64,000 bases of DNA, taken from Selaginella moellendorffii. Lineage: Eukaryota > Plantae > Lycopodiophyta. The DNA is taken from positions 387,117 through 451,116 of the forward strand of contig NW_003314268.1 of NCBI RefSeq assembly GCF_000143415.4, given 5' to 3'. Under the pieces are notes generated by a model. The model was given only the letters and a program-made list of their open reading frames with translations, did no database searches and had not been told where the DNA came from. The position numbers and the translations under genes were made by a program. Below are positions 11,166 to 39,690 of the stretch, piece after piece; positions within the stretch are counted from its first letter, which is position 1, and each line of letters begins with the position of its first letter.

Positions 11166-11167
11166 TG

Positions 11168-11455
11168 GCCACTAAGGGCTCTCTTATCAAGTAATTGCCC
11201 CTTTTTCAGTTGGCTTAAGGGGAGAGAGATAAAGTGCGCTACATGTGGTATTGGAGCAAATAGCACAGGTTCGATTCCCATTGATTAGTGGCTACTTAAA
11301 AATATAATATACCCTTGAGCAAAATATATTCCTACCCCTAAATTTGAAATCATACATATTGGACATTCGTGCGTACGTCCTTCCTCTTGTGTGGAGTATC
11401 CACAGACGAAAGTATCCACCGTAGGACTGCGGTATGGGTGGATAAGGTGCACTAT
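11168..11455 (+). mobile_element. Truncated TRIM copy (same family as 17800-18289)
   Basis: LTR end GTGCGCTACA at ~11243, then PBS-like TGGTATTGGAGC. Inverted homolog of ~17930-18205. Confidence 0.8.
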
Positions 11456-11703
11456 AGCTTGGACTCATGAGTGAGGCACATTAGCATGAGTTTGCACATC
11501 CACCGTAGGACTGCGGTACGGGTGGATAAGGTGCGCTATAGCTTGGGCTCATGAGTGAGGCACATTAGCATGAGTTTGCACTTGGGTTCATGAGTGAGAC
11601 ATATTAACAACTCAAGGTTACACCAAGCTCATGAGTGAGGCACATTAGCATGAGTTTGCACTTAGGTTCATGAGTGAGACATATTAACAACTCAAGGTTA
11701 CAC
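11414..11703 (+). repeat. Two overlapping tandem duplications (~84-bp and ~80-bp units)
   Basis: ATCCACCGTAGGACTGCGG...GAGTTTGCAC twice (11414, 11498); CTCATGAGTGAGG...CAAGGTTACAC twice. Confidence 0.85.
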
Positions 11704-14084
11704 TTTGAGTTAATAGGATTAATGTTAGCCTATTGGTGGTTCTATAAGTTGTTCCATATATTGGTGAATAGATTTGCTATGAGTGGCAAATAAACTAGTC
11801 TGTAGCTGTTTAGCACGGCACTATTGGATCCTTCCTAGGTATCATTATAAACAAATCAATCAAGATTATAAGAATTAGTCTATTGGTTCAAGTAGCCATT
11901 GTTGTGCTCTCTCATAAACTTTTCTTGGATTGGATTGAAGGCAGTGTGAAAGCAAGTTTGAGGTTTGGTCAAAGTAGAGTCTAAAAAGAAAGTCATCAAA
12001 GACGAAGGATCAAACATGTAAATCATTTTCTCTTGAAGAGATGATTTGCAACGAGGTGTTAACTCATTGCTTATGTTCACATTAATATCCCTACCTTGAT
12101 GTGTGTTGGAAATAATGGTTTTACAAATGGTGAGTTGCAGGATGGATAGCGGTGAAATGCTATACCATTTTATCTAGGTTTATTATTGAAGACTTGGGTT
12201 GCAATCTTTTCTAGGGAACCTTGTTATTGCTCCTTGAATAGCTTAGTGTTAGATTATTTTTGAGTTTGGTCAAAAGAGAGTGGCATGAGATTGTCCGTGT
12301 TGTGAACAAAAGTTAATGGTATTAAGTGTTATAAATCTTTATTGGTGGGGTGTGGCATTTATGTTACATTTTGTAGAATCGAGTTGGCACTTTAGTCATA
12401 TAAACCTTTGAAGTAATGACATGAGTGTTGCTCATGATGTTGCTCAATTGATGATCAAGTCATTGTGATACTTATATCATATCCATGTGATTGAGCAATA
12501 TGTTTATAAAGTTGCTTGGTTAAATAATAATCAACCCCAAAGTGGTTGATAGTGAAGTTAGTTTACTTACAAATAGTAACATTGAAATAACATTGATTGG
12601 ATTCTTAATGGTGGTCCAATTATGCTAAGCTTATGTTGATACTTTGTTTCCTTGAGGGGTTTGCTCATTTGGTGTTGGGAAATGTTATAACATTCATTTG
12701 CTATAGCTTGTTAGTGAATCTATTAGCACTTGGAGTAAATTGTTGGATGGAGAAGGTGTGTAGTTAAGGCATTGACATTGTTAGCACTTGTGTTAATGGA
12801 AGTGGCATTGTTATTTCAAGTGATATGGAATTTTTTTAAATCTTGATTTTCCATATCATTTTTCTTGTTAGTGTTTTGGCTTCACATTGAATTTTGGTAG
12901 TTGAAAAAGAGTGTTAATGCAATGTGAATATCCAAAGATATGGATGTTAATACCCATATTATAGATTTGTCTAAGTGGAGGTTGTGTACCAATATGAGTT
13001 CATCTCATGATTTACACTTTAGTTTTGATGAAGTGTTGATTATATAAAGCTAGCCTCTTCAAGACATGCTCAGAGCTATTGGCTAAACACATTAAGCTTA
13101 TTACAGTTGAGTTGGATTCGAATGGTCATTTAGTTCATGCTTGTTCATAAACCTTTATCTCGTACATGAGGTATTACGTTCATATTGGACAAGTATATGA
13201 CTTAATAGCATGAGTTTAGTGTTTGTGTCTTGTGAAGGCAAGTTGAAAAGTGATTGCTGGTTGCTTTGTGACTAATGATTGTTTATAAACTTTGTTAAGG
13301 ATTGTTAACACTTACTTCACTTAATGAATTAGCAGTTATGGGCTTGCTTTACCGGATGGTGTTGTGGAGGATCATGTCATAGGTTTGCATGGTTTTTCTA
13401 TGTTGGCATATCGATTCCACCTTTGTTGATATTATTTAGTTATATTTAATTTATGGTGTTAGATTTTATTGAGTCTTGGATGTGGTGAATCACTCCTTAA
13501 TGATGTGTTATTTGTAACTAAGTTTTATTGAAGGTTTAATCTCGGATACTGAGTAAGGTATTTTTGACTTTGGTTAGCTTGGTTGTTAAAGAATTTTAAG
13601 TGGTGATTCATATTTTGGTGTTGATGGCATTGAAATGATGCCTTATCGTTGACATTATTGATGTTGAGATTTAAGTGAGATGAGATGTCTCTTATAAGGA
13701 TTGATATTGAGTTTCATTAGTCTTGATGAAGATAGTGTTGATGATTAAGTTGTAGCTTTATGTTATTAGCATTCATGCATTTGCTAGTTAGCGATTATGT
13801 TGACATTCAAATGAACTAAGTGGTAAGCTGAGTTAGCTATGTTCTAGACGAGATTGTTTAGTAAGGGTTGAGCTTTAATTTATCCTTGAAAAGTGATTCA
13901 GCCGTGGATTATATTAGTTTTATGAGAAGAAGAGTTAGTGATCAATACTGAAATATATTAATCAGTGATGATTCTTTTTGGGCTTTTTATGAAGTGAGTT
14001 ATGTCTTGCTATAGATAGATTCATGGAAGATCATTTAGTGATCACTTATTAAGTATAACTTTGTTATGCTAAGCTTTTGGATTG

Positions 14085-22516: not shown

Positions 22517-22879
22517 ATGGGAAATTCGCTGGGGTGCTGGAGCAGCGACGAGAGATTAGCGCAAATTCGAGGAGTTACCTTTGTCAACAACACTGGCAGC
22601 ACGATCCAGCTAATGGAGAAGAATCGAGAGGTGTACGGAGGCTTGTTGTGTACTCTGGAGGCGCAGGCCCGTAGCGCGAAGCTAACTTATCCCAAGAACC
22701 AGCTCTACTATGCCATGGCGGTCCTCGCGCGGAGTGAAGATGGCCTGGTAATACCAACAAATCTGGCGGTTAGTTCCAGGGACATGGATTCTTACAGCCA
22801 AATCACAGTCTCTGTGAGAAATGGTGCTTACTTTCTCCAAGGCGTGAAGAGAGATCCTAGACAAGTGCTCGCTTCGTGA
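22517..22879 (+). CDS. Small intronless beta-rich protein (DUF7748-like), copy A, predicted N-myristoyl/S-acyl
   Basis: 120 aa starting MGNSLGCWSS; TATAAA at ~22464. Shares NNT..TI.L..K....YG.L...YY.M.VL with 36733 and 38975. Family name from recall. Confidence 0.8.
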   Translation: MGNSLGCWSSDERLAQIRGVTFVNNTGSTIQLMEKNREVYGGLLCTLEAQARSAKLTYPKNQLYYAMAVLARSEDGLVIPTNLAVSSRDMDSYSQITVSVRNGAYFLQGVKRDPRQVLAS

Positions 22880-24768
22880 TCTTGACGGGATAGTGGTCGG
22901 CGGGCCTTGGGTGTGGGAGATATACGAGCTTGTAGTGTGGATTCAATGGCTCCCAGCTGTGTTGGTGTGTGTGAGCCTCGCAATGCAAAAGATGGAAAAC
23001 GTTGTGCTTACTTGTATTTCGTGATGAGATGGTGGATGATGATGCTGCTCTGGATCTTGGAGAGGTTGCTTCCGGGACACTTTCGATTGCCCAAGCCGAA
23101 GGCAACGTACGTATGAGGCTGAGGCTTCTCGTTCTTGACACGGAAACTTCCGGTTAACGTAGGGAATACGACCAAAGAAACCAAACGCTTACAATCCAGC
23201 GGTCGGGATCAAACTCTCTCGGGTTCTTGTGCACGAGGGGATCCATGTGTACTTGTCGTAGCCACGCCTCTACGAACCATCCTCTCGGGATTGTGTAGCC
23301 TGGTGAATTCGTTGGTCAAGTATATATCCTTTTCAAAAGCTCTCTAGAAGTTTACTCACCGTTTAGCTGCACGTCGCTAAGAACTTTCCGAAAGACAAAC
23401 GGGGAAATGTTAATCAGCCTCAGGGTCTCATCAATCACCTTCACAGAAAGTCAGCGGTCATAAAGAACTCGAAGAAACTTTAGCATACTCTAGACATGTA
23501 AGTCATGCTCCTGATGTCAGCTAGTGTAAGGCTTTCGCCAGGCAATTTCTTGAGCGCGATTTCATCTTGTTCAGCCTGCAAACAGCACTGAGAAAATATT
23601 CATACTGAAAGCTAAATGGATACCTTGAGTCTTTGGTAAACAGCAGGGTGCTCTTTCAGGAGGATGGCCAACCAGGTAACGAGATGTGCCGTGGATTCGT
23701 GCCCTGCGTTCATAAAAGACATGATCAAATCCACGATTTGATCATCTTCTAGAGGTTGACCGCCCTCGTCTGTGGCGTCCAGCAGCATGGACAAAGTATC
23801 TCCTCCTCTCTTCCTGCTTTTCTTTCTTTCGTAGAATATTCGCCAGAAGTCATTTGCCAACGTTGCGCGTGCCTGGTTGAACCAAGCACAAACTTAAGAC
23901 GGAGAAAGAAGAAGAAGAAGAAGAAGAAGAAGAAGAAGAAGAACCTTGACAGCGTTACTGTAAGCAGTGCCTGGAAACTTGAGTGGTAAAGCACGCAGAC
24001 CCTTGTTCATGGTGTGAAACAGTCCAGACACCTGTTTGAAATCAATCCCTGTATCCTCTCCTACTAGAATCTCGTGAATAGTTTTCAACGTAAACTACAG
24101 AAACGACAGAAACAAAAAGCAGGTTAGAATTTTGCGGATTGTTTTGAGGCTCGCTCACCATTCTTGCTTCATCTAGAAAGACGATGTTGCCTCGATCCGC
24201 CCATTCGTCTAGCAATTTCTTCACGTTTTCTTCAATGCAAGGCATTTGATGCTGAATTGCTTTCGGTGAACTTAAAGCCGGCTTGACCAGTTTGCTGAGC
24301 TTCAAATGATCGTCGCCCGTCACTGCCGAGAGAACCTTCAGTCCCAGAAGGTCTTTCACCACTCGCTCTGGCCATCCGATCTCAAAAACATCATGGTTAC
24401 AAAGCACGGTCTTACATACTTCTGCTGATGTGGCCAGAATGGTAGGCTGCCTGAACAAAAACGCTTTATACAGGCCTCCACATCCATACCTGCAAGAAAA
24501 GCAGAGGTTTTAAAAAGAAAAAGGAAATTAACACTTACTTGGAAATGAAACCCGCTACAAAGGACTCCGGATTGCTTGACTTGAAGGCCTGTAAGAAATC
24601 CCCCATGTTTCCGAAAACAGGCCAACCAAGCGAACCTGGTGGCAATGGTGGCGATCCAGGTCTAAGCTTCGGAGCATAAAACCAGCTGTTGAAGTTGAGA
24701 ATGCACGAGATAAGGACGATGATCAAGGCCACTGCCATGGAAGGAAGCCAGAGATCCATTGCCTGCAT
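22857..24768 (-). CDS. KAO: Cytochrome P450 CYP88 family, ent-kaurenoic acid oxidase-like
   Basis: [45 protein letters not shown] heme motif, and the CYP88-type tail YLPHPRPAD. Confidence 0.88.
23908..23943. repeat. (GAA)12 microsatellite starting at the 5' splice site of a CYP88 intron
   Basis: Seen directly. Confidence 0.95.
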
Positions 24769-24953
24769 GGCTGCACACAAGCGTCTTTTCAAACGCTTAA
24801 AAGAGCTAAAAAATTTGGTCGCATTCTCTTATCGTATCAAACTCGAAAACTTTAGATTGCTACCTGTTTGGATTGGCGCGGAATCTAAACTGACGTGTAA
24901 GCTCTTATTCGCAGAAAGGAAAGACCAAAAAGTATAGGTCAGGTGTCAATACA

Positions 24954-27746
24954 TCACAAACGTGAGATTTGAAGCGCTGGAGCATCCATGGAAATTCTTA
25001 TGATAACCTGGAGACAAAGTCATGAAATTAGTGCGCATCATTTCAATCAAATCGCAATACCTTGCCAACACTTTTTCCAGAATGAAGGTACTCCACAGCA
25101 TCACATGCAGAGCTTAGGCCAGTAAAGGGTGTTGGATCAACTGCAATCTGCAGAGAAGTAGGTTGTATTCTCGCTCAAAGAGCAGATAAGCACGATACCT
25201 TTAGCTTCCCCCGACTGTGTAAGCTATGAAGTTTCGCAACGTGTTCTTTCCAAAGCTTATTGTGATGCATTAAGTAGAATCCAACCTGGATAACCTTGTT
25301 AGCAAAGCAGCATTATGGCAGCACTTGCTTACGATGGTTTGCGATTTCCACAGCAACTTCTCGCAAAGTCCAGGATAGTTTCTCGGTTGCCATCCACCTT
25401 CTCCTTGATACTGCAAGAAAGCGTTTTCATATGGCGGCTAAAATACAACATTAACACACCTGTGATATCATTCCTATGACGATCAGACGTCCAAAAGTTG
25501 CAAGAGCATTCAGGCATGTGTCAAACATCGTCCCGCCAACAGATTCGTAGACAAGGTCTACTCCACGTGGATATTCTTTCTTCAAAACCTGTTCATCTGT
25601 TAGATACTCCATAGCACTTCTTACATACCGTTTTTATGTCTTCCGCTTTGTAATCTATAACCCTGTCCACCCCAAGCGACGAAAGCAATGCAGCTTTGTC
25701 ACTTCCACCACAGGTGCCAATCACTTTATTGCCTGCTAGTTTTGCCAACTAAAATAGAAATCAAAGAACTATCACTTGTAAGTACTGATAAAAGCACTAC
25801 CTGTACAGCAAATTGTCCAGTTCCTCCAGCTGCAGCAGTCACAAGAACAGTTTCACCTGATCTCATCTTGCCAGCCTGCAAACGGGATGGCAATCAGTCT
25901 TTATGTGGAAAGCTAGCACCACTACCTCTTGCAAACCAAGAGAAGCCGTCAGTCCAGAGACAAGTATAGCCACAACTTCAGGAGTTGGGGAAGGAACAGG
26001 AATGACAGACTTTGCAGGAACCTGCAAATCTAGTTAGAACAAAAATTTCACTTTTCTTTTGCTAAACCTGTGAGTATTCTGTAAAACCCCCGTAGCTAAA
26101 GGTTGCAACAGCAGATCCTAGCGCAATCTCATCTAGAGCTACGCCAGGTCCAATGCCTGCAACCACTCCAACGGACTGCAAAGCGCACAAAAGAAAAACT
26201 TACATAGAAATCTAATAAAACTTTACCTCAAAGCCAGCAACAAAAGGGAGGCGCGACAATGCTTCTTTCTCATTTGCAAAATAACGTCCAGAGCTATAGT
26301 TCACCTGAAACATAAGCATATGTAAGATAAAAAAAGAGTTGCACGCTTACTTACATCACTTGCATTCACACCAGCATAGTAGTTCTTTATAAGTACGTGG
26401 CCTTCTCTCACAGGAAGTCTTAGTGGTACCGTGACGATTTTCGTGGCCACACGAAAATTGCTGCTCAGCTTATGAACCATCCTGAAAACAGCAATTGTAG
26501 AAACAGGATCATAATATAAAAAATCACTTACAGTTGATCAAAGGACGTAGGCAGATTTGGAGACGGAAGTCCTTTCGATTCTTGAGGGATTCTTTTTCTT
26601 CTACCGTGTACCAGGAACTTGTTTTCCTCTTCTTCTGAAGGCCAATACTCCGGACCACGCCTGTTTGTTATCCAAAGACAAACACCTCCTTTGCTATCAT
26701 CTTCAATGAGCTGAAAGGCCCCTGAGGAATAAAAAAACACGACGTTGCTTCTGAATAGTTAAATATACACCTTACCGTGAATAAGCTTGTCCATTGATAG
26801 ATAACCTCCGGTTATGTCTATTATTTTCCTATCCAGAGACTTCGCCATTGGAGTCTCGATAAACTGGAAGCTAGCATGTATGTCAAAATCGAAAAAAATT
26901 GTAAACGGTGCACTGACCTCGGGACAGAGCGCGTTCACTCGTATTTTTTCTCTGCGAAGTCTTGATAGCGATCTCGTAAACAACACAACACCACCTAGAA
27001 AAATGTAGTGTTTCGACAGTAAAATGAAATGCGACCACCTTTTGAGCTTTTACCTTTACTTCCGGAGTAGATTGGCATCAGGGGAGCCGGATATAATCCC
27101 GCCGCAGATGCCAGGTTTATGATCACTCCCGGTTGTCCCCGAGCTCGCATTGCTTTGACCTGTAAAGCCCAGTAAAAGAGACTTTAAACTCTATAGCCAT
27201 GGATGAGCTCGAGCACAAACACACCGCTTGCCGGGTACACTCCACAATTGCCACAAAATTCACATCGATCACTCGCCTCCACGTTCCTTTGTCATCGTTT
27301 ATAAAATCAGAATTGCCTCCAATCCCAGCAGAGTTGATGCAAACATCGAGTCGTCCAAACGCTGAGTGGTGCTTCGCAAACGCGAGAGAAAGTTCCTCTA
27401 AAAGAGCGAAGTATTAGTACTTGACATAAAAATGAGCAGTGTGTGTGTGTGTGTTTGAGCATACCAGGTTTTGTAACATCGCACTGGACAAAAATGGCCG
27501 CCGTGCCCGAGATGCCGAGCCTGGAATGGACTTCCTTCACTAGATTGAGCGTCTCGAGGCCATTTCCAGAGTCGAAATCGACAATGGAGACACTGGCGCC
27601 CTTCTCAGCGAGCGCAAGCGCTAGCGCTCGTCCTAGACATCGCAAAGAACAAAAGATCGGCCGAAATCCAGGCATGGAACACGAAATTTACCGATTCCAG
27701 AGCCAGCGCCAGTGATGAGCGCAGCGTGTCCAGCTCCGATGATCAT
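24954..27746 (-). CDS. SDR plus zinc-binding-type MDR fusion (NQR/ARP-like quinone oxidoreductase, At1g49670-like), peroxisomal
   Basis: [58 protein letters not shown]; C-terminus ...LQISRL* (PTS1). Confidence 0.88.
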
Positions 27747-27954
27747 CCTTGCGGAAATTTTCGCGATGGCGACACGATCGCGATCGCTACCTAGGGCTTG
27801 CTAGAGAAAGAGAAATTATATATTTGCGGTCATGACAAATAGCAATGTGTTTTAGCTAGAGGAATCTCTTAGCATCAAACGATGCTTCCTGGCGCTTGCT
27901 GCCTAGAAATGCGTTCTTCTTCCCAATCCCTTGGAAGCAGTGGCCAATAGCACG

Positions 27955-28638
27955 ATGAATCACCACGAAGAAATCCCGCTCTCTCATCTCAATCAATCCA
28001 TGGCCAGCAGTAGCAGCAATGGCCAGGATCGCGACGAGGAAGCTCTGCTAGGAGGCGGCGGCGTCGATCCATTCGAGCAGATCGCAGGCAACAAGGCCCT
28101 GAGGCTGCGGCTGGATTTCTGGAAGAAGGAGGAGGAGGTCGTGAATCAACGCATCGAGCGCAAGGAGCAGCGATTGCAGAGCGCCAAGAACGAGATCTAT
28201 CAGCTCCTGGGGATCTACTTCGTGTTCCAAGGTGTGATTCTCACCGCCCTAGCCCAGGCGAACGATCTCTCCGAGAAGTGGCGCTGGATCCCCTTCGTGC
28301 TCTCGACGCTGGCGTCCATGGCCACGATTCTCGCCCTCGTCTATAAGCTGCGGGATTGCTCGGAGCTGGAGCGCCAGATCAAGGGCGAGAAGCTCATGTC
28401 CAAGGCGCTGTTCCAGGCCAGCGACGATCTCAAGAGCATGGGGAGCGCATTCGATCACAAGGATGTCCAGCGCCAGCCCCACATTACGCACAGGCCGCAA
28501 GATCGCCCCAAAAATCTTATCCCCAGGATCTGGGAAGATCACATGAAGGCTTACGGCGCATTGCTAGTAGTGATCTTGCTCATCTTCTCCACGATCATGG
28601 GAATTGCTTGCTGGCAAATCACATCGAGCAAAAATTGA
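27955..28638 (+). CDS. Coiled-coil plus 3-TM protein (PTHR33287/SLATT-like), copy 1, intronless
   Basis: DPFEQIA..LRL..WKKEEE...NEIYQLLGIYFVFQGVILTAL...WIPFVLS plus a C-terminal hydrophobic helix; GC-rich codons; paralogs nearby. Confidence 0.88.
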   Translation: MNHHEEIPLSHLNQSMASSSSNGQDRDEEALLGGGGVDPFEQIAGNKALRLRLDFWKKEEEVVNQRIERKEQRLQSAKNEIYQLLGIYFVFQGVILTALAQANDLSEKWRWIPFVLSTLASMATILALVYKLRDCSELERQIKGEKLMSKALFQASDDLKSMGSAFDHKDVQRQPHITHRPQDRPKNLIPRIWEDHMKAYGALLVVILLIFSTIMGIACWQITSSKN

Positions 28639-28773
28639 AAGAGCGCTGCTATTAAGTTCCGATTTTAGGGTTCTTGAGCACTAAAGCATATTCCTTAACG
28701 CTCAAAGAATATTCTTCGGAGGTCAAAGAAGACGAGTTCGTCTGTGAGGGTTTGATCGCTCGCTTCTAGCACA

Positions 28774-29439
28774 ATGCTGCGCCCCAGTTTCGTTATCCCG
28801 GTCACTCCAAGTGATGAATCGAACGCTCCTCCTCAAAATCTCACCCCTGGCACCGATCCTTACGCGCAAATTGCTGCAAATCCCGCACTTAAGCTGCGTC
28901 TGGAATTGTGGAAGAAGGAGGAAGAAGTCGTGAACCAGCGAATCGAGCGCAAGGAGCAGCGCCTCCAGAACACCAAGAACGAGATCTATCAACTTCTAGG
29001 CATCTACTTCGTCTTCCAAGGTGTGATTCTCACTGCCCTGGCCCAGGCCACAAATTTGCCCCAAAGTCGCGTATGGATCCCTTTCGTTCTCTCGATGCTC
29101 GCCTCGCTCGCCACAATCCTCGCTCTCATCTTCAAATTGGAGGATTGCGCAGAGCTCCAGCGCCAAATCGCAAGCGAGAAGCTGCTATCCAGGGCCCTGT
29201 TCCAGGCCAGTGACACGCTCAAGAGCATGGGCAACGATTACAACCCCACGGATCTCCAGCTCTTGCCCCATCTCCAAAATCCCAAGACCGTGGATCGATC
29301 GCAGCTTTCGAGGATCTGGATCAGCCACATGGAGGGATACGGCGCATTCCTGCTAGTCATTCTGTTCATCTTCTCCGCGATAATGGCCATCTCGTGCTGG
29401 ATCATCCACAACGACGGCTCCTCAGAACCCAAGAACTAG
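28774..29439 (+). CDS. Coiled-coil plus 3-TM protein, copy 2 (tandem paralog)
   Basis: 221 aa; core nearly identical to copy 1. Confidence 0.88.
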   Translation: MLRPSFVIPVTPSDESNAPPQNLTPGTDPYAQIAANPALKLRLELWKKEEEVVNQRIERKEQRLQNTKNEIYQLLGIYFVFQGVILTALAQATNLPQSRVWIPFVLSMLASLATILALIFKLEDCAELQRQIASEKLLSRALFQASDTLKSMGNDYNPTDLQLLPHLQNPKTVDRSQLSRIWISHMEGYGAFLLVILFIFSAIMAISCWIIHNDGSSEPKN

Positions 29440-30226
29440 TAACCGTCCGATAAGAAGGTTTTACGCCGTCCGATCGGATTATAAAAATCATGGACAATAA
29501 TGACCGGGGCTTTTAGTAGGGTTTATAATCCGAGCAATCGGCCATTTTCTATACTCACGGCTTTCTTTAGTATCGCTTCGAAATTTCTACGATGATCCAT
29601 CGGCGCCAGCGATCCGGTAAGAAATCCATGGATTGCGAGTGAGCGAGCGCCATTAGGAGTAGAACTAGCGCCATTGCGAGGGCCAGGGCTCACACAATCA
29701 ATGCGCGAGTCGAAAGGTTTCTATTCTTCCAAGTAAGCTCTTGCCTGGCATGATTGAAGCTTGCACTTTCAGTGGATTGATAGCACCTGCATTGTGCCGT
29801 GAACATAAAGTCGCAAAGTTTTTAAGTGGAGGGGACCAAAAAACCTGGATGAAAGAGGGATATGCGCTTCCATATCCTGCGATCTTCACAGGTGTGCTTC
29901 CGGAGTGACTTTTCTTTTGTTCTCTCTCTCTCACTGTTTAGGAGAAATCTCTGCTTTCTTTGCGGCTAAGTTGTCCTTGTTTTCATTCTATAAGGTGTCG
30001 TATTCCCTTGTGTTGTTGAGTCATCTTTTCTTGTGGAAAAGTCGGCTTGAGCTCGTGGAACATTTAAAGTTTTGTGCTCCCTTGTTTACATTGTAGTTCT
30101 TCCCGACTCGTTTCTAAATCTAAGATTTAGTTTTGCTCCAGGAGTGGCTGCTGGTCTTTGCTCCAAGTTTGCTTGCACCAATCCAAGATCTGAGGAAGAA
30201 CAGGTGGTTTTTTCGGCGCTCGTCTC

Positions 30227-33200
30227 ATGGGAAAGTATCCGACAGGTCCTACGAGCTGTGTTGATGATCCATCCTGCAGTGTTCTCATCACCAGCGTCAC
30301 TCAGACAGGCCCTTTGATCGTCTACGCGTTTTGGGCTTTCGTTATCAGCTGCTGCTCGGCATTTCAGCTCTGGAAGTTCTTGAAGCTGCGAAGGAATCAG
30401 GTGCAACCTTTAGTCCTCCAGAGGAACGGGAAAGGCGAGAATTTTTCCTCATCTGATAGAAAACCGGGAGAAGATCATGTGGTGAATGTGGAAGAGGAGA
30501 AGGAGCTCCGAATCACTGGCTACACTTGGTCTTATTTTGGAGAGTTCTGCTACTTTCTCTGCTGCCTGACATCGCTTCACTGGATCCTGCTCCACTCGCT
30601 CTTACTTTTCGATGCATACAATAAGTGTCAAGTCGGTGGTGTTGATAACTTGTGCTTTTATGGGAATTATTCGGTGTTCGGGAGTTATGACTTCAATGGA
30701 AAGGTTCGCAAAAACTTTTTTGTTCTCGATTGAATCGTGGTACAACTTTGCCCTCTTGTTGCAGATCTTTTTCGTGGTCTGGTGGCTCTCGGCCATTTGG
30801 TTTACAGCTTGGGTAATATTCAAAGGCCGAGTAAGATTTTGGTTTCGAATTCCTTGCGGTCTTGAGTCTGCCGGAGTCGTCTTTATCTGGACCAGAGAAA
30901 GCGAGCAGATTTTGTCGACAAACGACTTGCCGCTCGTGCACTACGTCCGTTACTTTCGAGTAAGCTTGACAACTTCTATAATATAGAGTGATTCACGTAT
31001 GCTAAATTGTTCAATTTTGCAGAATTTCCTATCAACTTTTGAAGAGTTACATGGTCATTCCGAGATTGTCAAAATACTCACTACAAAGGCCGGGCAGCGG
31101 CATTTTTTCTTTCAAGGCCACAGGTTCTTGATCAAAGGCGAAACTGTGACAGACGTGCACTTCAAAGTTGGGGAGAGATACTCAGATTTCCTCAAGGTTT
31201 TAAAACTTTATTTATATTGCACTGTATCGTTGCGTCTAAATTATTTTTCTTTTCCATTGTTTCCGGTAGGAAGCCGAAGGTCTTACTGAAGGGGAAGCTG
31301 AAAAGCGTTTAGAAGAACTTGGTCCAAACGAAATCCCGTTTAAACCAGAGTCCCTCTTCTATTCTATATTCGATGAAACGTTCACGCTCTTTAAAGTGTA
31401 TCAGCTCATTTCCTACATTTTGCAGTTCTGGAGTAGCTACTTATTCGTTGCATCGCTCATGATGTTTATTGTGGCACTGAGCGCTGCGATAACCATTTAC
31501 AATCGACGTCGAGGCCAGTTCATGATAGCCAAGGTAAGCGTTGTGAATCAGTTTCAGATGGTTGGAAAACGTCCTTTTTTGTTTTCAGATCACTGAGTAT
31601 GATACGCAAGTTGAAACTCTGAGAAGCGGTCAATGGATAAACCTTGCTTCGCGAAACTTGGTACCCGGGGATGTTATCAAGCTCAAAAGCGGCTGGGTGC
31701 TTCCATGCGATCTACTGATCATCAAAGGTTTGAAACCGTCTGTTTCTCGATTTTTAACTAGCTTCGAGCAGGCTCCTGTGTTTGTGACGAGAGTGCTTTG
31801 ACTGGTGAGCCCATGCCAGTGCAAAAATACGCTGCTCCCAACACCGACGTGCAGTATAAGGCCGATGGCCTTGGCTCGCGGCATACTTTGTTCTCTGGAA
31901 CTACTCTACTTCAAGCAGGACAGGGCCATGATGATGCTCTCGCAATTGTCACGGAGACAGGTATATGTTTTTGCCATGGTTTTTTCTTTCACTATGGAAC
32001 GCGTTTTTCTGTGACCCAGGTATGTCAACCTCCAAAGGCGAACTGGTCGCGACGATTTTGTACCCTCAAAAGCTCATCTTCAAGTACGATGAGGAGCTCC
32101 AAATCGTTGCCTGTCTTCTTTTTATCTACGCTATCGTATGCTTTGGTGTGTCCATAAAGTTTCAGGTATATATTCATGTTTCACTATATGAAATCATTTT
32201 TGCAAACTGTTTGTCTATTGTGGACCAGAACATGAACGGACAGCAGAGTATTTGGGTGACAAAGTGGATCTACTGTATGTTCATCATAAATCAGATAATG
32301 TCGCCACTATTGCCGGTCGCTCTTGAAGTTGGACAAATTCACGCTCTGGAGAGTTTAAAGGCACGCCTTCTTACCTCCTGTTTCCAGTTCCTTATGTTGT
32401 TCTTTCAGAAGCGTGGGGTGTTTTGCCTCAATCCAAAGCGCATAGCTATCGCTGGGAAGATACGAGTTTTCTGTTTTGACAAAACTGGGACATTGACAAA
32501 AGAGGGACTCGATTTTGTTGGAGTTCAGAGTGTCGTCACTAACTCCTTTGGACCAGTTTTATCACTTGAAGGGGGTCAAAGAATTGATGATATTGTTTTG
32601 CATGGACTTGCCACATGTCATGCTGTTACAAAGTTCGGAAAGGACTTGGTTGGAAACCAGGTTGAGGTAAATTTGTAATTTTCGCAGAAAAGCTTGGATG
32701 ATCTTTTGTGTGATAGGTGAAAATGTTCTCAGCTGTGGGATGGAATTTGATAGAGTCCGCAAACAGTCCCCCAGTCGTTTCAGATGGTTCCGGATCACGG
32801 ACCTTTAGAATCGTGAGACGAAACGAGTTTGATCAATCGAGAGCAACAATGAGTGTTGTTGTGGAGGACAACTCTGGAAACTTTCACATCTACTGCAAGG
32901 TTCTTGCGTCTAGCATTCGTAAACCTTCACTCATCAATATTTCCGTTCAAGCATGGCAGGGTTCTTTCGAAAAGATTAAGGAGCTGAGCAACGCTCAAAG
33001 CCTTCCAGCGGACTACGAGGACAGAGCACGGCTTCAAGCCCTGCAAGGTTGTTATGTTCTTGGTTTAAGCTACAGGTGCACGCTGTTTCCTCAGTCTTTC
33101 ATGTTTTGCAGCTGGCTTTTTATACTGTTTTCTTCCAATGGCTTATTGCTGAACCTTGCAGATATCTTGGCCGAGAACTGGGATTTGAAGACATGTTAGC

Positions 33201-35171
33201 ACTACCAAGGAATGAGTTGGAAAAGGACCTGAATTTTATATCTCTGGTCTTGTTTAGGAACGAGCTCAAGCCGGATAGCTCTGCAGCTATTCAATCTCTC
33301 AAAGCTGGAAAGGTACGTTGTCTATATTGATTCCGCTGGAAAACGAAATGCTCCTGGTCTACAGGTTCGTCCCGTGATGGTTACCGGTGATAATGCTCAA
33401 TGCGGCCACTATATTGCTAAACAATCTGGTATGTTCTCATCTGACTGTAAGATACTACTGGGTGATATAACGAACGACAACAGGTTAGTCTTATTCTTTA
33501 TGAAAGATCTTTCTAACGATAGCTTTGTCTCTGTAGCGTGGTATGGTCTTCATTGAGTAGTGAAGTGACAACGGGTATAAGCCGCATGACCACCGAAGAA
33601 CTTCTTCAAAGTAGAGCGAGCTCACTTGAGGATGGGACCTTGGAACTTGCGGTTACGGGTAAAGCTTTTAATCGCTTACAAGAATCCAAGAGAATGGACG
33701 ACTTACTTCTTTACACACGAATCTTCGCAAGATTCACTCCTTCCGATAAGGTTCATCTTGTTCCCTTTGATAATAGTCTCATGCAGTTGTGGACTTGCAG
33801 GAGAAAGTGGTAACTATGCATAGAAACCATGGCCTAATCGTGGGAATGTGTGGTGACGGTGGAAACGATTGTGGAGCGTTAAGGGCCGCACACGCCGGCA
33901 TCGCTTTAAGTGCTGCAGAAGCATCGGTGGTGTCTCCATTTACTGCCCGAAACAAATCGGTCAGTTCAAGCTTTTTTCTGAAACAATCGCGCAAAGTTGA
34001 TGTTTTCTTTGTAGGTCCAAGCTGTGGTAGATTTACTACGTGAAGCGCGAGGTGCTCTCCATACGTCATTCGCATGCTACAAGTTTCTAATTATTTATGG
34101 CCTCCAGTTCTCAATATTCAAGCTTTGTTGTTATTGGTAAGCTTGGACTTTCGAGATCTTCCCGACGCTTAGCGCTTTCAATCCAGGTTTGGGATTATAG
34201 CCTGCCAAATGGACTACATATTTATTGATGGCGTAGCTGTGCTCAGCCTTGGTTATGCCATGTCTCGGTGCAACGCTGAAAAAATACTCAACAAGGTTCT
34301 TACACTTCTTACCTTGAGTGTATGAAATGTTTAACCGTGGTAATGACAGGTGAGGCCTACTTCCAGTTTGCTTGGACCTTTAAACGTAGCATCGGTGCTG
34401 GGGCTATGGGGAAGCAACGTTGTGTTCCTGGTGGCTGCAATTTGTTTCATGGCAAGCCAGAAGGATTACGTGAGATGGCCGGCACAGTAAGTGATTGGTT
34501 TTGTGAAGTTCGTGCTCAAAATCTCGTTTGTTTCAGATACTCTCGTGGTGCAAGCTGGTGGACGCTGGGTGACAACTGGGAGTCCACAGTGTTGTTCTTC
34601 ACAATGTATTTCCAGTTCATCACGTCCGCATTCGTTTTCTCGTTTGGCTCCAAGTTTCGAAAGACCGTATTCAAAAACTTCTCTTTGATGGTAAATCTTC
34701 TACTTTCAAGTAGTTTCAAGTACTTAAGTCTTTTCCGCGCAGGTTTCGTACTGGTCATTGATCGCTGTGTGCTCTTGTCTATTGCTTCTTCCTCACAACA
34801 AGTTCACGGAAGTATGGCACGTTGCAAGCGAGCAATTCAACCGTGCAAACCCCGCCTCTCCAGTTTGGGCGTCTTACCAGGTAAAAAAACTCTCATTCTT
34901 TCCACAACTAAATCATATCTCTTCGTGTTTTCTTCCAGAAAAATGGTGGACAGCCTTCGCCGGCCATGAGCTTTGATTTCCGTTTCAAGCTATGGTGGAT
35001 CATTCTCGCGAGTCTCGCCATCAATATAGCTTGGCAAAAGGTTTGAAGTTTTCCATTCCAGAAGAGAAGGAAAAAAAATCTCACTTTGCGTTCCAGGTCG
35101 TAGTGGAAGGCCCACTGGCACGGATTTTAGCTGCGAAGTATCCCTCAAAGCGGCCAAAGCTACACATATAG
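30227..35171 (+). CDS. P5-type (P5B/ATP13A-like) P-type ATPase, multi-exon
   Basis: [67 protein letters not shown]; M4 motif SPLLP. Confidence 0.92.
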
Positions 35172-35268
35172 AGTATATTCTTAGAATCGCCAAGAATGTA
35201 CGGTACCAGAAATTTATAAATCTCAAGGGCAAGCGCCATCCTGATTTTAAGATTTAGGGCTTTGTGGA

Positions 35269-36411
35269 ATGGCGCGGGCGATGGCGATTTCGGCTCTACC
35301 GGCTGCGCGTCTCTCGAGAGTAGGCCTCTGGATTCCTCCCACATTTTTCTTTTCTTTCTGCGAATGGGATTGGATTTAGCCAGGCTTGCTCCGCTTCTGA
35401 CAAAGACAAGCTCCAAATTCCCGCTGCTGCTAGTGTCCCCGAGCTCAAGACGACGATCTTACGCTCCGTGTCTAACACAAATCGTGGTAAGGTGAGCTTG
35501 CTCTAGATTTTCTTTCCTGATTTCTCTTCCACGCGACCGCGACTCTTTTCTTTTTGTGGATTTCCTTCTTCTTAGGATGCAACGAGTGAGCAAAAGCAAA
35601 AGATTTTGTCACTGGTGGAGGTAAGAAAACTTTTGTGGTGTGATTATTACGTTCTTATTCTCTTTTGTCTAGGAACTAGAGCGTATGAATCCCACTAAAA
35701 ACCCAGTAAACTCTGATCTTTTGTCTGGAACTTGGGCTTTACTTTACACGGCTCCACTGAATGGTATGCTTTGCAAGCTTTCCAGGCTGCTAATTCTTGT
35801 TCTGCCTTTCCACGCAGAAGAAATTGTGGATAGATATGCTGGCACCGAAGAGGGCCCTTTTCTTTCAAGAATCAAACCACTGGCATTTGGAACTATCAAG
35901 CAAACTCGAAGCTTGCAGGTAGTGTTTCCTCATTTCTTGTTGGCAAGCCTCTTTTTCTTTGCGTGCAGATTATCGATTCCATCAATGGGAGCGTGAAAAA
36001 CATTGCAGACTTTTCCTTTCTTGGGATCAATGGTATAAAGTTCTTCTATTCTTTTGGTTCTTTTCCTTACGATAGCTTTTGATCCTCACAGTTTAAAGCT
36101 GTGCAGGTTCTCTGTGCATAAACGCAGCAGCCGTAAAATCTTTGGAGCCTGACACACAAGGCGTCCGTCTGCTCGTCACGTTTGAGAGCTTTGTGTTGAC
36201 GATCAACAGGATCCGAGTTGCCACCATTTCTCTCGCGTTCATCAAACCAAAGGGGTAAGAAAGCAGCTTAAACCAGGATCTTTCCGTGACTTTCTTCTTG
36301 GCTTGCAGATGGGTTGACACTACGTACCTGGACGACGATATGAGAGTCGGGCGTGGTGACAAAGGATCCATTTTTCTTGCCGTGAGAACGAAAATGGTCC
36401 CATCACTATAA
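35269..36411 (+). CDS. Plastid lipid-associated protein / fibrillin family
   Basis: ELERMNPTKNP...LLSGTWALLYT, WVDTTYLDDDMRVGRGDKGSIF; spliced. Confidence 0.85.
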
Positions 36412-36444
36412 TTTCGATCCAGGTGATGCTCCATTCCATTCTCG

Positions 36445-36690
36445 GTTTTTGCAAAGGATCAACTTACGAGCTGCTGCTATCAGAGACTCGAAGATCACAG
36501 TGACTGCTGCATTTTGCTCTCCGGATCTTCTCACATTGCTGGAGCTTAGAAAATGATATCGCCAGGCTGATCAAAACATTTGTACCATGGAAGATAAGAA
36601 ACAACGCCGGCTGGATAGCTTTTTTAAAGTGAAGCAAGTATATTCCAAGAATCGCCAAAACTGTACGGCACAAGCCGCGTACGGCAGCAC
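36445..36690 (-). pseudogene. Internally deleted copy of the 3-TM gene
   Basis: Near-exact blocks shared with 37909-38649 (TTGCAAAGGATCAACTTAC.AGCTGCTGCTATCAGAG; KLQQCEKIR); no intact ORF. Confidence 0.8.
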
Positions 36691-36732
36691 TCCCGTACTA
36701 TCTTGTACGGAGTGCTCTGTTTTTAGGGTTCT

Positions 36733-37158
36733 TCAAAACTTTCTCTTGAACTTCTTGACGGCGAATTGGCCGTTGCGGTGCGCGGAGACGACGATCCGGT
36801 CGTGCACGGCGAGATCGTCGGTGTCGATGAGGATCTGGGTGTTCCCCTCCTCGCCGCTGGTGTCGGTCTTGGCCAGGAGCCCCATCTGGTAGTACGTCAT
36901 GGTGCCCACGAGGTCGGCGGGGACGATCTGGGCGGAATTGGGGAGGACGGAGTGGCGCAATCGCCCGAATTGGTTCTTGTGCTTGTCGCGGAGCAAAATC
37001 GTGTGGGCGGTGTTGTTCACGATCGATGTCGTGCCCTCCCTTTGATCATCGCTGAAAGAGCTGGAGCTGGAAGAATCGGAGCTGGAGCTGGGACTGGAAT
37101 TGGATGTGGAATGTCTCTCGCAGATCGAGAGTGTCCTGCTGTAGGAGAAGCACCTCAT
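36733..37158 (-). CDS. DUF7748-like protein, copy B (Ser-rich N-terminus, no Gly2)
   Basis: ATG at 37158; TATA (rc TTTATAT at ~37218); IVNNTAHTILLRDK...YYQMGLL...IDTDDL. Confidence 0.8.
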   Translation of the reverse strand: MRCFSYSRTLSICERHSTSNSSPSSSSDSSSSSSFSDDQREGTTSIVNNTAHTILLRDKHKNQFGRLRHSVLPNSAQIVPADLVGTMTYYQMGLLAKTDTSGEEGNTQILIDTDDLAVHDRIVVSAHRNGQFAVKKFKRKF

Positions 37159-37589
37159 GATCCTCCTGGAGATGAAATGGAAGGACACCTGGTTCTCCTT
37201 CGCTTCTTCTTCTTACATTTATATCGTGGGGAAATTCTTTAACGTGTTGCGTGTTGCGTGTTTCTCTCCAACCACGAAGCTACCGATGCGTAGTGTGACA
37301 ATGTCACACGCTTTGACGAATCCATGACCACTGTGACCTTTAGGGCACACGTCATCGAGATTTTCCCGCTACTTTCTTCTAGGGTTCTTCGCGTGGCGGC
37401 ATTCTCCATCTCCGTCGCATTGCTGTCGCGATTGCTACATTCGCAAGCCGGAGAGCGATCGCCATCGCCGCCTCCTCCTCTCAAAGGATTTAGGGCGAAA
37501 GGCAAGTTCCACACTGCCAGTGTCGCCGTGGTGAGCAATTTCTCTTCCTTTGCGGAATCTCTCTCAGGGTGCTTCTTATTTCTAAGATT

Positions 37590-37885
37590 TTCGGTGTGGA
37601 GAACTGCTATTTGGAACAATCGACCAGCTTGCAGGTAATGTTTAATGAATTTCTTTGTCTTTTGGAGAAGTTCTCTTCATGTTTGCTTGCAGATTGTGGA
37701 TGCGGAGCCTGAGAATTATTACAGAGCCTTCCTTGAGGATAAAAGGTATGGAGTTTTTTCTTTCTTTCTCCGTTTAAAAGAGATTCTCTCGCTTTTATCT
37801 TTTATCAAACCAAGGCACAAGCAGAGACATTCACGGTTGATCAACACTACGTATATGGACGAAATATCAATCCAGGTGATGCTCT
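37590..37885 (+). pseudogene. Decayed duplicate of the fibrillin gene
   Basis: Colinear relics: TTTGGAAC.ATC...AGCTTGCAGGTA.TGTTT, TGCAGATT, TT.ATCAAACCAA, ACACTACGTA..TGGACGA (TTYMDE), TCCAGGTGATGCTC. Confidence 0.7.
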
Positions 37886-37908
37886 ATATGCATGGAATTC
37901 CATTCGAT

Positions 37909-38649
37909 CTATTTACGCTTGCAAAGGATCAACTTACAAGCTGCTGCTATCAGAGCCGTGAAAGCTACGGTCGCGGTGACAATGGATATCTTCCATTTCA
38001 CCGTCGTTTTCCTCGCGGGAGGAATCATGACTGGCTGATGCTCCAGATTGTTAGGATCATAGTCTGCTCCAAGTCCAAGAAAGCGCTCCATCGTCCGCGC
38101 TACGGCTCTCGAGTTGGCCTTCTCGAGATTAATCTCGTGCCGAATCTTCTCACATTGCTGGAGCTTATACCAAACAGCAAACGCTACCGCCATGCCCGCG
38201 AAGATGGTCAAAACAAAAGGGATCCACCAGAGTCCACACTCGAGTTTGGAAGACTGGGCCAGAGCAGTGAGAACCACGCCCTCGAAAACCACAAAGATCC
38301 CAAACAACTGGTATGTCTCGTTTTGAGTCTTTGTTAGCGACTGCTCCATTTGCTCGATTCGTTCTCGCAGAAGCTCGTCTTCGTTCTGCCATAGCCGGAG
38401 CTGGAGCAGCAATGCTGGACTGGATTCAATCTCGTGCAAGACATTCCTCGCTCTCGCAGGAGTCGCTGAAGTAGCACCTCCACTCCCAGGTATTTCTTCT
38501 GAACTGAAACTTGACCTTGGACTTAGAAAGGTTTCAGCTTGAGTTCTTTCAGGAAGTTCAGTAACTCGATTACTACCTGGTTCGTCCAAGCTAGGAATTT
38601 CGTGCTCCACTTCGCCAGAAGTACTTACATTCGTGAAATTTTCACTCAT
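37909..38649 (-). CDS. Coiled-coil plus 3-TM protein, copy 3
   Basis: 246 aa; LRLWQNEDE...NETYQLFGIFVVFEGVVLTALAQ...WWIPFVL. Confidence 0.88.
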   Translation of the reverse strand: MSENFTNVSTSGEVEHEIPSLDEPGSNRVTELPERTQAETFLSPRSSFSSEEIPGSGGATSATPARARNVLHEIESSPALLLQLRLWQNEDELLRERIEQMEQSLTKTQNETYQLFGIFVVFEGVVLTALAQSSKLECGLWWIPFVLTIFAGMAVAFAVWYKLQQCEKIRHEINLEKANSRAVARTMERFLGLGADYDPNNLEHQPVMIPPARKTTVKWKISIVTATVAFTALIAAACKLILCKRK

Positions 38650-38974
38650 ATCGTTGCTCTCGAACAGGGAAGAACCAGGATTGATCGCCTGTGGAGGAAA
38701 AGTAAACGGCTTGACGTGCGAGACGGCGATGCGTGCAACGACGCAGCACGTCTCGCGAGTGTAAACAAAGCTCCCAGTGTTTCTTCCGGCTACCGTACAC
38801 GTCTTTTGTTGGTTTCGTCTCTTCCTGCAGAGTAAGCCATCTCTTTTTTTCTTTCATTGTTTTGGTCTTCTCCTTCGTCTTCAAACGCGTGCTCTCATCA
38901 CTAACGTTTGACTGCAGCCTCTAGCGGACGATAGGAACAAAGAAAAGAAAAAGAAAACAGAGGCTCTTTTGGGG

Positions 38975-39430
38975 ATGGGAAATTCTTGGAGCTGCTGCTG
39001 GAGCTCCAGATCGCGCGAGGCAGACGAGGCGAGCGGCGAGGACAAGGTCCCCAGCGTTTTAATCCACAACAATACGGAGAGGACGATTGGCCTGCGCGAC
39101 AAGGAGAGGGAAGTCTATGGCGTGCTGAGGTACAAAATCCCCGCAGGCGCGAGAGAAGAGATTAGCGTCGACTTGAGAGAGGCAGGGACTTACTACCGGA
39201 TGGCCGTGCTCGTCATGGTGGACGAGAAGAACGATAACAAAGTGGAGCCGACGCATCCGCCACTGTTCATCGACACGGAAGATCTCCACACCCAAAAGGT
39301 AATCACGATCTCTCGAAAGGGCAACAGGTATGTGCTCGAGAAGGAGGGCCGAGCTCACTTCAAGAACGGCAGTAAGAGCAACGCCGGAGTGTCCAAGCGG
39401 AACTCCTCGGCAGAAAAGGAGGCCTCTTGA
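38975..39430 (+). CDS. DUF7748-like protein, copy C, predicted N-myristoyl/S-acyl
   Basis: MGNSWSCCWSS; IHNNTERTIGLRDKEREVYG...YYRMAVL...IDTEDL. Divergent from the 3-TM gene at 38649. Confidence 0.82.
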   Translation: MGNSWSCCWSSRSREADEASGEDKVPSVLIHNNTERTIGLRDKEREVYGVLRYKIPAGAREEISVDLREAGTYYRMAVLVMVDEKNDNKVEPTHPPLFIDTEDLHTQKVITISRKGNRYVLEKEGRAHFKNGSKSNAGVSKRNSSAEKEAS

Positions 39431-39690
39431 TGGGAAAAGAAAGTAAAAGCTTCTGATCATCGATCGATCGATTACTCGTTTTGAGAGTGTTTTCAGCGCC
39501 GCGTGTTTTTTTCCTTTCAAGGATCATGTCGATCTCAGTGAAAATGCTATCCAGGCCAAGTTTATAAATAATCATGCTTTCATTCTAAGAATTCACGTTG
39601 ACTTGGCGAGTTTGACTCGTTGACCATTCGTTGGCTAAACGGCGGGAAGATCTTTGATTTCCGCAGGGGAGTTTCTTCGTTTGATCTAGA

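Follow-up and report, generated by a model that had tools for sequence, protein, structure and literature searches.

Two protein families, here called X and Y, are found together in a short part of the window, which is the whole 64-kb stretch of Selaginella DNA that was analyzed. Three X genes, three Y genes and one small Y relic lie inside 17 kb, and no extra X or Y copies were found in the 64-kb window by tblastn and HMM searches. The six X and Y open reading frames (ORFs) lie exactly where the initial annotation had placed them, and the features of the locus are as follows.

22517..22879, + strand: X1, a DUF7748 ORF of 120 aa, intronless (Pfam PF24928, 32 bits)
27955..28638, + strand: Y1, a coiled-coil and 3-TM protein of 227 aa, coding sequence intronless (Y-family HMM, 232 bits)
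28774..29439, + strand: Y2, tandem paralogue of Y1, 221 aa, starting 135 bp past the Y1 stop
36410..36610, - strand: Y relic, short degraded pieces of the 3' part of a Y3-like gene (blastn and tblastn)
36733..37188, - strand: X2, a DUF7748 ORF, intronless (Pfam, 31 bits), with RNA contigs over 36508-37197
37909..38649, - strand: Y3, ORF of an intact, diverged Y paralogue, 246 aa
37954..38831 (exons), + strand: spliced RNA antisense to the whole Y3 ORF, from contig joints in four transcriptome sets
38832..38917, + strand: intron in the 5' leader of X3, GT..AG, from RNA contigs
38975..39430, + strand: X3, a DUF7748 gene of 151 aa (Pfam, 20.3 bits, sub-threshold), with RNA contigs in four runs

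The assignment of X to DUF7748, at first made from recall, is borne out. The PF24928 model spans 92 positions with a gathering cutoff of 25 bits, which X1 and X2 both exceed; X3 scores below it and is tied in by tblastn homology to X1 (4e-11) and X2 (1e-10), pairwise identity among the three proteins being 29-39%. X2 is 151 aa long when counted from a GTG and 141 aa from the first ATG, and its N-terminal part is Ser-rich and has no MG start. The N-termini of X1 (MGNSLGC) and X3 (MGNSWSCC) fit by eye the pattern M-G-x-x-x-[STAGCN] with a nearby Cys, whereas that of X2 does not. As X proteins in mosses start with MGKL, MSKL, MVKL or MTKG, the MG start is unconserved, and the suggestion that X is a membrane-anchored protein is not supported for the family, the lipidation-type MG...C motif being seen only in X1 and X3. 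The structural model of X is poor (pLDDT 54), its best match (VIA, Z 4.0) being to generic, unrelated beta-sandwiches and not to an aegerolysin. No MACPF or aegerolysin Pfam match was found either, and all that remains of the analogy to aegerolysin/MACPF binary pores is the broad notion of pairing a beta-rich small protein with a membrane-acting partner; unlike those systems, Y has no MACPF domain and both X and Y look intracellular, no signal peptide being seen in their sequences. Neither the X nor the Y model significantly matches a solved pore former, and nothing was found behind the comparison with paired immune receptors.

Y had been described as a coiled-coil protein with three TM helices, in agreement with the hydrophobic runs in its sequence and the three long helices in its model. 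In the AF2 model of Y2 (pLDDT 66) these helices span residues 37-94, 101-155 and 175-214; the first enters TM1 and the second extends from TM2, forming a two-TM hairpin flanked by cytosolic helices, and the last is an additional, third TM helix. Y2 is 60% and Y3 33% identical to Y1 (33-37% for Y3 against Y1 and Y2), and Y3 keeps five near-invariant residues of the family: F122, G124, C138, G194 and C243. The relic has the orientation of Y3 and is composed of two DNA pieces detected by blastn: 36410-36485 matches 37863-37955 at 75% identity, and 36521-36548 matches 38140-38167 at 96%. It also gives tblastn fragments at 36442-36501 and 36521-36610. It does exist, though tiny, but it lies ~120-185 bp from the X2 stop and not at the ~40 bp originally given. 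The 325-bp gap between the head-to-head genes Y3 and X3 was measured correctly, and the statement that all members are intronless applies to coding regions but not to the spliced 5' leader of X3.

The resemblance of Y to SLATT (SMODS and SLOG-associating 2TM) proteins, which have been predicted to be pore-forming effectors (PMC7159879, citing Burroughs 2015), is weak. Comparison with Pfam SLATT_1-6, DUF4231 and NCBIfam NF033634 gave the best bit score for Y3 against NCBIfam SLATT_1 (E 0.0016, 18.4 bits, below the cutoff of 41); this profile matches 8 of the 51 Y members with a best E of 3e-4, all sub-threshold. Pfam DUF4231 matches the family weakly (E 0.016-0.34), and the commonest NCBIfam/PADLOC matches, also weak, are to SLATT_1 and to CBASS/Pycsar/CARF-type TM effectors (2TM, PycTM, CARF_TM). 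None of the 51 members matches a Pfam SLATT family at E<=0.01, and some Sphagnum homologues carry the UniRef name SLATT protein, yet even these have no Pfam SLATT match. As TM-rich profiles cross-match easily, the weak SLATT matches carry little weight; the proposed SLATT-like core is weakly supported by the recurrence of these matches, and every SLATT model remains below its cutoff. Searches outside the family returned no Y relative in bacterial and archaeal genomes (pattern scan with the Y alignment), no match of the Y profile to PDB sequences, and no match of the Y model's shape to the ESM Atlas (TM<=0.34) or, at E<=1e-3, to the PDB. A literature search found no paper naming DUF7748 or PTHR33287, and none on plant SLATT proteins.

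In comparing Y with the prokaryotic SLATT effectors of CBASS-type and other conflict systems, the shared traits are the helix-TM-TM-helix core, the weak recurrent matches to SLATT_1, DUF4231 and PADLOC 2TM/PycTM/CARF_TM, the operon-like placement next to the gene of a small partner, and fast evolution with many paralogues. Unlike those effectors, Y is below every SLATT threshold, has a third TM helix, has a land plant as its host, has DUF7748 as its partner, for which no prokaryotic counterpart was found here, and lacks an adjacent nucleotide-signal enzyme: no SMODS, SLOG, TIR or other nucleotide-signal gene is present among called neighbours within 10 kb at the 11 plant loci for which DNA was available, nor is there one in the window.

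RNA evidence for the window is drawn from the contig sets of four Selaginella transcriptomes; the contigs are unstranded, and direction was read from splice sites. RNA contigs are present over both X2 and X3, and the X genes of the window have their own transcripts, while the Y3 ORF is covered in these four transcriptomes only by spliced antisense RNA. The introns of this RNA (38311-38370, 38490-38537 or -38552, and 38621-38667) are all GT..AG on the + strand, and a chain of joints ties it to + strand exons at 37693-37875 upstream and to the X3 exon downstream. No contig of Y3 sense RNA was seen in the four runs, which in unstranded contigs does not demonstrate its absence.

Y homologues in other plants were gathered by exhaustive profile search; a word search with Y matched one Diphasiastrum protein and otherwise just the Y paralogue. 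Neither X3 nor a three-sequence X alignment matched anything in word-index protein searches, not X itself either, and X was therefore reached only via Y loci and a pattern scan. Viewed from Y, 6 of the 10 loci in other plants have a Pfam-confirmed DUF7748 ORF (31.8-106 bits against the cutoff of 25) located 0.2-0.6 kb downstream on the same strand. These are four paralogous loci in Sphagnum, one in Ceratodon and one in Physcomitrium (L005, L008 with two units, L009, L011, L012 with two units, and L013), the Physcomitrium locus being L012, where two Y-X units stand in tandem. Viewed from X, Y is directly upstream in 17 of 17 Sphagnum-type X metagenome contigs, from about six paralogue groups, these being the contigs with enough upstream DNA. 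The initial annotation had made its proposal depend on linkage beyond this locus, and such linkage is present in all three mosses. That two families expanding independently came together by chance, in this window alone, is barely conceivable; tandem duplication alone can heap unrelated families locally, but the neighbours in Sphagnum, Ceratodon and Physcomitrium have fixed order, strand and spacing, and this explanation was rejected.

The association is not obligatory for Y. At four loci (Diphasiastrum, Adiantum, one Physcomitrium and one Sphagnum) no X lies within 10 kb of Y, and in Taxus Y genes are present with no DUF7748 annotated; Y is thus able to exist alone. In the moss arrangement X comes after Y on the same strand, at a distance of 0.2-0.6 kb; in the Selaginella window the genes are head-to-head or X precedes Y, on opposite strands or with kilobases between them.

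Two spliced, cDNA-like Sphagnum contigs carry the Y ORF, stop codons, a spacer of 45-69 nt and the X ORF in a single mRNA. One (L026) equals the genomic contig L023, with L020 also compared, less three GT..AG introns, and the other (L034) equals locus L013 less three such introns; in both, the Y ORF terminates in a stop, more stops follow, and X opens with its own ATG. The Sphagnum unit, which also has an intron within its intercistronic spacer, is dicistronic in the sense of two complete, separate ORFs in one mature spliced mRNA, and this does not apply to the Selaginella window, whose Y3 and X3 genes occupy opposite strands. Several gene models might suggest instead that Y and X are one moss gene spliced into a fusion protein and that the pair is an annotation artefact: P0011 (401 aa), P0135 (239 aa) and the Physcomitrium isoform P0204 are fused Y+X models, and a 450-aa gene call at L008 covers both genes. 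This is very improbable and largely rejected by the stop codons between the two ORFs in both cDNA-like contigs; P0011 and P0135 moreover retain only the C-terminal half of DUF7748, and in Selaginella X and Y are on opposite strands or kilobases apart. A close parallel is CDC26-TTM3, a conserved dicistronic nuclear gene of plants and green algae, which similarly has two non-overlapping ORFs on one capped, spliced mRNA in an arrangement conserved across distant lineages. The X/Y unit differs from it in the intron of its spacer, in having multiplied into many paralogues, and in being split in Selaginella into separate, even antisense-overlapping, transcription units.

Divergence of the partners is correlated (r = 0.88 between Y-Y and X-X identities, Mantel p ~2e-4), and since the two co-vary, the pair duplicates as a unit. 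Taken together, the linkage, the shared mRNA and this co-variation show X and Y to be the paired components of an old, co-inherited land-plant module that is co-transcribed in peat moss, and in the Selaginella window the module has multiplied locally to three X, three Y and one relic and has been rearranged. Between close Sphagnum copies pN/pS is ~0.7-1.6, from small counts; with the many paralogues and the relic, such values could reflect conflict-gene-like evolution, and weak constraint would fit equally well.

X and Y are very probably coupled in function. It is improbable that linkage reflects only the descent of one shared transcription unit from a dicistronic ancestor, with proteins that never touch and serve separate processes. 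Complex prediction gave no support for contact: X3 residues 22-135 with Y3 residues 70-246, run with family alignments unused, returned an ipSAE of 0.00, which is 'no answer' and counts neither way. The rearranged Selaginella pair and the separate X transcripts agree with the reading of a merely shared unit, and therefore the strict Y-then-X unit is not essential. However, even with this rearrangement three members of each family are still found within 17 kb, in a lineage that parted from mosses long ago; the divergences of the partners co-vary, and at least six Sphagnum paralogue groups retain the pair.

As to the form of the coupling, it is tentatively proposed that Y acts as an effector and X as its regulator, a reading that remains somewhat doubtful. 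Y would be an N-in 3-TM protein in which a cytosolic amphipathic helix leads into a polar-faced TM1-TM2 hairpin (motif NE.YQL.G...VFQGV.LTA.AQ), and would oligomerise into a membrane-permeabilising or channel assembly of SLATT type. X, as a small cytosolic beta-rich protein, would bind the cytosolic helices of Y and either gate Y or hold it off. Co-transcription in mosses would fix how much X is made relative to Y; in Selaginella, X1 and X3 may reach the membrane via their N-terminal myristoyl/palmitoyl-type motif, and X would be kept expressed and Y low, with Y3 under antisense RNA only. This scheme would resemble toxin-antitoxin and holin-antiholin pairs, in which a small membrane protein (here Y) and a small soluble partner (X) are co-transcribed, co-duplicating and fast evolving, and the overlap of Y3 by antisense RNA continuous with X3 mRNA adds to the likeness. 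Unlike toxin-antitoxin pairs, X/Y has a eukaryotic host and no sequence relationship to any such family.

It is rather unlikely, though to be weighed seriously, that X and Y belong as two subunits to a membrane complex of an ordinary, non-lethal kind (for example a channel, a transporter accessory or a membrane-organising factor of non-seed plants), in which co-transcription only matches subunit amounts. Known eukaryotic dicistronic genes often encode members of one complex or pathway, the linkage and dicistronic data fit this equally, and no defence-type neighbour is consistently present. The many lineage-specific paralogues, the relic, the fast protein divergence and the pN/pS near 1 would nevertheless be unusual for housekeeping genes, and Y persists without X at several loci. 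The effector-regulator reading can be carried further, to a cell-death or immune module that is ancient in land plants and of the prokaryotic conflict-system type, in which a SLATT-derived pore former Y would be restrained or set off by X, a DUF7748 sensor/regulator that evolves fast. The module would be an operon-like dicistronic unit in bryophytes, and in Selaginella the X3 mRNA leader, antisense to Y3, would help silence the effector; this extended form is unlikely.

Land plants have few conserved gene neighbourhoods, and dicistronic mRNAs encoding two proteins are rarer still. The X/Y pair provides a 'guilt by association' link between two function-unassigned families, from mosses to a lycophyte, and supplies a concrete two-protein hypothesis that is testable in Physcomitrium. 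Whatever their function, the Sphagnum transcripts are a multi-paralogue case of operon-like expression in which the intercistronic spacer contains an intron. Should Y prove to be a membrane effector of SLATT type, a bacterial-style effector/partner module would be operating in plants whose classical NLR receptors are reported to be very few.

The ORF list contains all six genes of the two families where the initial annotation had placed them: three of the DUF7748 family (X) and three encoding coiled-coil proteins with three transmembrane (TM) helices (Y). tblastn and HMM searches of all six frames found no extra X or Y copies in the 64 kb.

669-3394, minus strand: broken helicase-like ORFs, probably Helitron/PIF1-type, at the left end of the window
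3969-4307 and 10011-10349, plus strand: two identical 112-aa ORFs 6 kb apart, probably LTRs of a retrotransposon
22517-22879, plus strand: X1
27955-28638, plus strand: Y1
28774-29439, plus strand: Y2
36410-36485 and 36521-36548, in Y3's orientation: Y relic, two short DNA pieces
36733-37188, minus strand: X2
37909-38649, minus strand: Y3
38975-39430, plus strand: X3

The X proteins share 29-39% pairwise identity, and their Pfam DUF7748 scores are 32 (X1), 31 (X2) and 20.3 bits (X3) against a cutoff of 25; X3 falls below the cutoff alone, yet tblastn links it to X1 (4e-11) and X2 (1e-10). Y2 and Y3 are 60% and 33% identical to Y1, and the alignment of all three runs from a coiled-coil helix through two hydrophobic helices set close together and a polar helical stretch to a third hydrophobic helix; the nearest Y homologue found is a protein of the lycophyte Diphasiastrum. 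Y1 and Y2 form a same-strand tandem with 135 bp (28639-28773) from stop to next ATG, which is scant promoter space, and co-transcription of the kind seen in the moss Y-X units may occur here. The surrounding genes, named from ORF translations (aldo-keto reductase, P450, SDR, P-type ATPase, fibrillin), are of the spliced housekeeping type, with RNA joints confirming splicing for fibrillin only; intron lengths in the window are 48-86 nt, which, like the lycophyte homologue, is consistent with Selaginella moellendorffii.

The co-clustering had been taken to suggest a two-component membrane system, and linkage of X to Y does extend beyond this locus. When the 10 kb flanking Y homologues on either side in other genomes were scanned with an X HMM, with Pfam confirmation of the hits, a DUF7748 ORF closely followed Y in the same orientation at six moss loci, with about 235-550 bp from Y end to X start.

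L005, Sphagnum magellanicum chromosome 4: X downstream of Y, same strand; 65 bits, two tandem DUF7748 domains
L008, S. balticum: X downstream of Y, same strand; two inverted Y-X units
L009/L010, Sphagnum scaffold: DUF7748 gene downstream of Y, same strand
L011, Ceratodon purpureus: X downstream of Y, same strand; 67.5 bits
L012, Physcomitrium patens: X downstream of Y, same strand; two tandem units, 106 and 57.5 bits
L013, S. magellanicum chromosome 19: DUF7748 gene downstream of Y, same strand

X was not found within 10 kb of Y at four loci, one each in Diphasiastrum (L001), Physcomitrium (L002), Adiantum (L004) and Sphagnum (L006). Conversely, a search with Sphagnum-type X recovered 22 loci in metagenome contigs, about six paralogue groups by identity to the query and X N-terminus. 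Y was directly upstream on the same strand in all 17 contigs where about 700 bp or more of DNA precedes X, one of which (L019) is counted on a weak, partial match (E 2.9e-5), and the remaining five were too short upstream to score. Chance cannot explain so constant an order, strand and spacing, though the loci are not phylogenetically independent.

In S. balticum (L008) the whole Y-X unit is present as an inverted duplication, 3104-6254 (minus) and 10001-12869 (plus), with 81% identity in Y exon 1 and 97% in X; in the assembly's gene models Y and X are joined, each model giving one protein, of 450 aa in one case and 401 aa in the other. On the Sphagnum scaffold of L009 (16660-19649) and L010 (10789-13778), the Y-X pair is followed after 5-8 kb by an LRR gene and a COR-A (ROCO-type) gene, a closeness that may be coincidence.

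The two genes are also found on one RNA. The Sphagnum contig L026 matches genomic L023 at 100% identity apart from three absent segments with GT..AG ends: one is the Y intron, one is an intron of 255 nt that separates the Y stop from the X start, and one is an intron at the X end; L034 bears the same spliced relation to genomic L013. In both, the Y ORF is closed by a stop with more stops after it, and X has its own ATG 45-69 nt downstream. L026 and L034 are spliced RNA-derived contigs carrying both cistrons, with the caveat that assembly can merge overlapping transcripts. Three database gene models join Y to part of X (P0011, P0135 and the Physcomitrium isoform P0204), which points to read-through transcripts in several species.

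Across nine pairs, Y-Y and X-X identities are correlated (r = 0.88, Mantel p about 2e-4, a test inflated by shared ancestry), as duplication as a unit predicts. X always diverged faster than Y in the pairs compared. Between the two Sphagnum lineages of the pair, identity is 33-40% for Y and 14-25% for X, and these lineages are old. Close Sphagnum copies give X pN/pS of 0.35-0.43 at dS about 0.37, and at shallow divergence roughly 0.7-1.6 for X and all Y parts, on small counts; this shows fast evolution or weak constraint, with positive selection not proven.

Y reaches the cutoff of no Pfam family. An exhaustive profile search collected 516 representative clusters at E<=1e-3 and 320 at E<=1e-10; the organisms among 30 clusters looked up are the mosses Sphagnum, Physcomitrium and Ceratodon, the lycophyte Diphasiastrum, the fern Adiantum and the gymnosperm Taxus, frequently with tandem arrays, and other clusters are unlabelled transcriptome or peat-metagenome contigs. 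UniRef labels several Sphagnum members 'SMODS and SLOG-associating 2TM effector domain-containing protein' (SLATT). The commonest NCBIfam match is SLATT_1 (8/51 members, best E 3e-4; Y3, E 0.0016), Pfam DUF4231 matches weakly, and the commonest PADLOC matches are TM effectors (CBASS 2TM, PycTM, CARF_TM, SAVED_TM, RT-SLATT); all of these matches are sub-threshold, and TM-rich profiles cross-match easily, which leaves Y a putative SLATT member. In the AF2 model of Y (pLDDT 66) a long helix leads into TM1, which a tight turn connects to TM2; TM2 is prolonged as a helix, and there is a third TM helix. From K/R distribution the topology is predicted to be N-in, C-out, in which case the TM1-TM2 loop would hold a Cys conserved across the family, and the 'SC..ILC' motif at the C terminus would lie on the far side of the membrane. 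Fold searches with Y and X gave nothing usable, nor did a prediction of the X-Y complex. Y may be a SLATT-like oligomeric membrane effector or channel, with X as its putative cytosolic partner.

X1 and X3 of Selaginella have an MG...C motif typical of dual lipidation; moss X proteins start MG, MS, MV or MT, so the membrane anchoring of X that was first proposed is at most lineage-specific. The best conserved DUF7748 features in the X-family alignment are two Asn-x-Ser/Thr motifs, 'VN[NEKD]T' towards the N terminus and '[PK]N[ADQ][ST]Y' mid-protein, which resemble glycosylation sequons, yet X proteins are without a signal peptide. At L005 (11813-12652), a Ser/Thr-rich tail follows the two tandem domains of the Sphagnum X, and that assembly has no gene annotated for this protein.

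Four unstranded transcriptome contig sets were mapped onto 35600-39600 (4,001 letters) of the window. RNA contigs span X2 (36508-37197) and X3 (38918-39557); in run X4 they reach about 4-9 times the word depth of adjacent contigs, though contig depth cannot rank genes.

38832-38917, plus strand: X3 leader intron, GT..AG, from RNA joints

All contigs over the Y3 ORF are spliced with GT..AG on the plus strand (introns 38311-38370, 38490-38537 or -38552, and 38621-38667) and are therefore antisense to Y3, their joints leading from upstream plus-strand exons through the antisense stretch to the X3 exon. This multi-exon RNA spans 37693-38831, through the whole Y3 ORF, and continues at 38918-39552 into the X3 mRNA; it may act as an antisense regulator of Y3 or may form a long X3 leader, and translation of the joined exons gave no convincing ORF upstream of X3. 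Depth in the bin with intron 38311-38370 equals flanking depth scaled for the intron in 4/4 runs, and none of the contigs in the four runs keeps it. The assemblies therefore contain no sense Y3 mRNA, which shows low expression rather than absence, as contigs drop rare variants. The fibrillin gene (CDS about 35685-36411, plus) is spliced in RNA contigs, and its 3' UTR has a spliced GT..AG intron (36423-36483) inside the Y relic, homologous to intron 37876-37953 beside Y3, indicating a plus-strand intron copied by duplication; its 3' end and the convergent X2 transcript are merged in contigs.

DUF7748 is an existing Pfam entry, and the SLATT name is already attached to some Y homologues in UniRef. 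Literature searches found no mention of DUF7748 or PTHR33287 and nothing on plant SLATT proteins or the X-Y gene pair; the conserved pairing and its dicistronic transcript appear undescribed. A plain two-subunit membrane complex is a serious rival to the effector-and-regulator reading. X and Y are a conserved, co-duplicating module that is co-transcribed in peat moss, and a potentially harmful effector with its regulator would fit the many paralogues, the relic, the fast divergence, and RNA-covered X against antisense-covered Y3.
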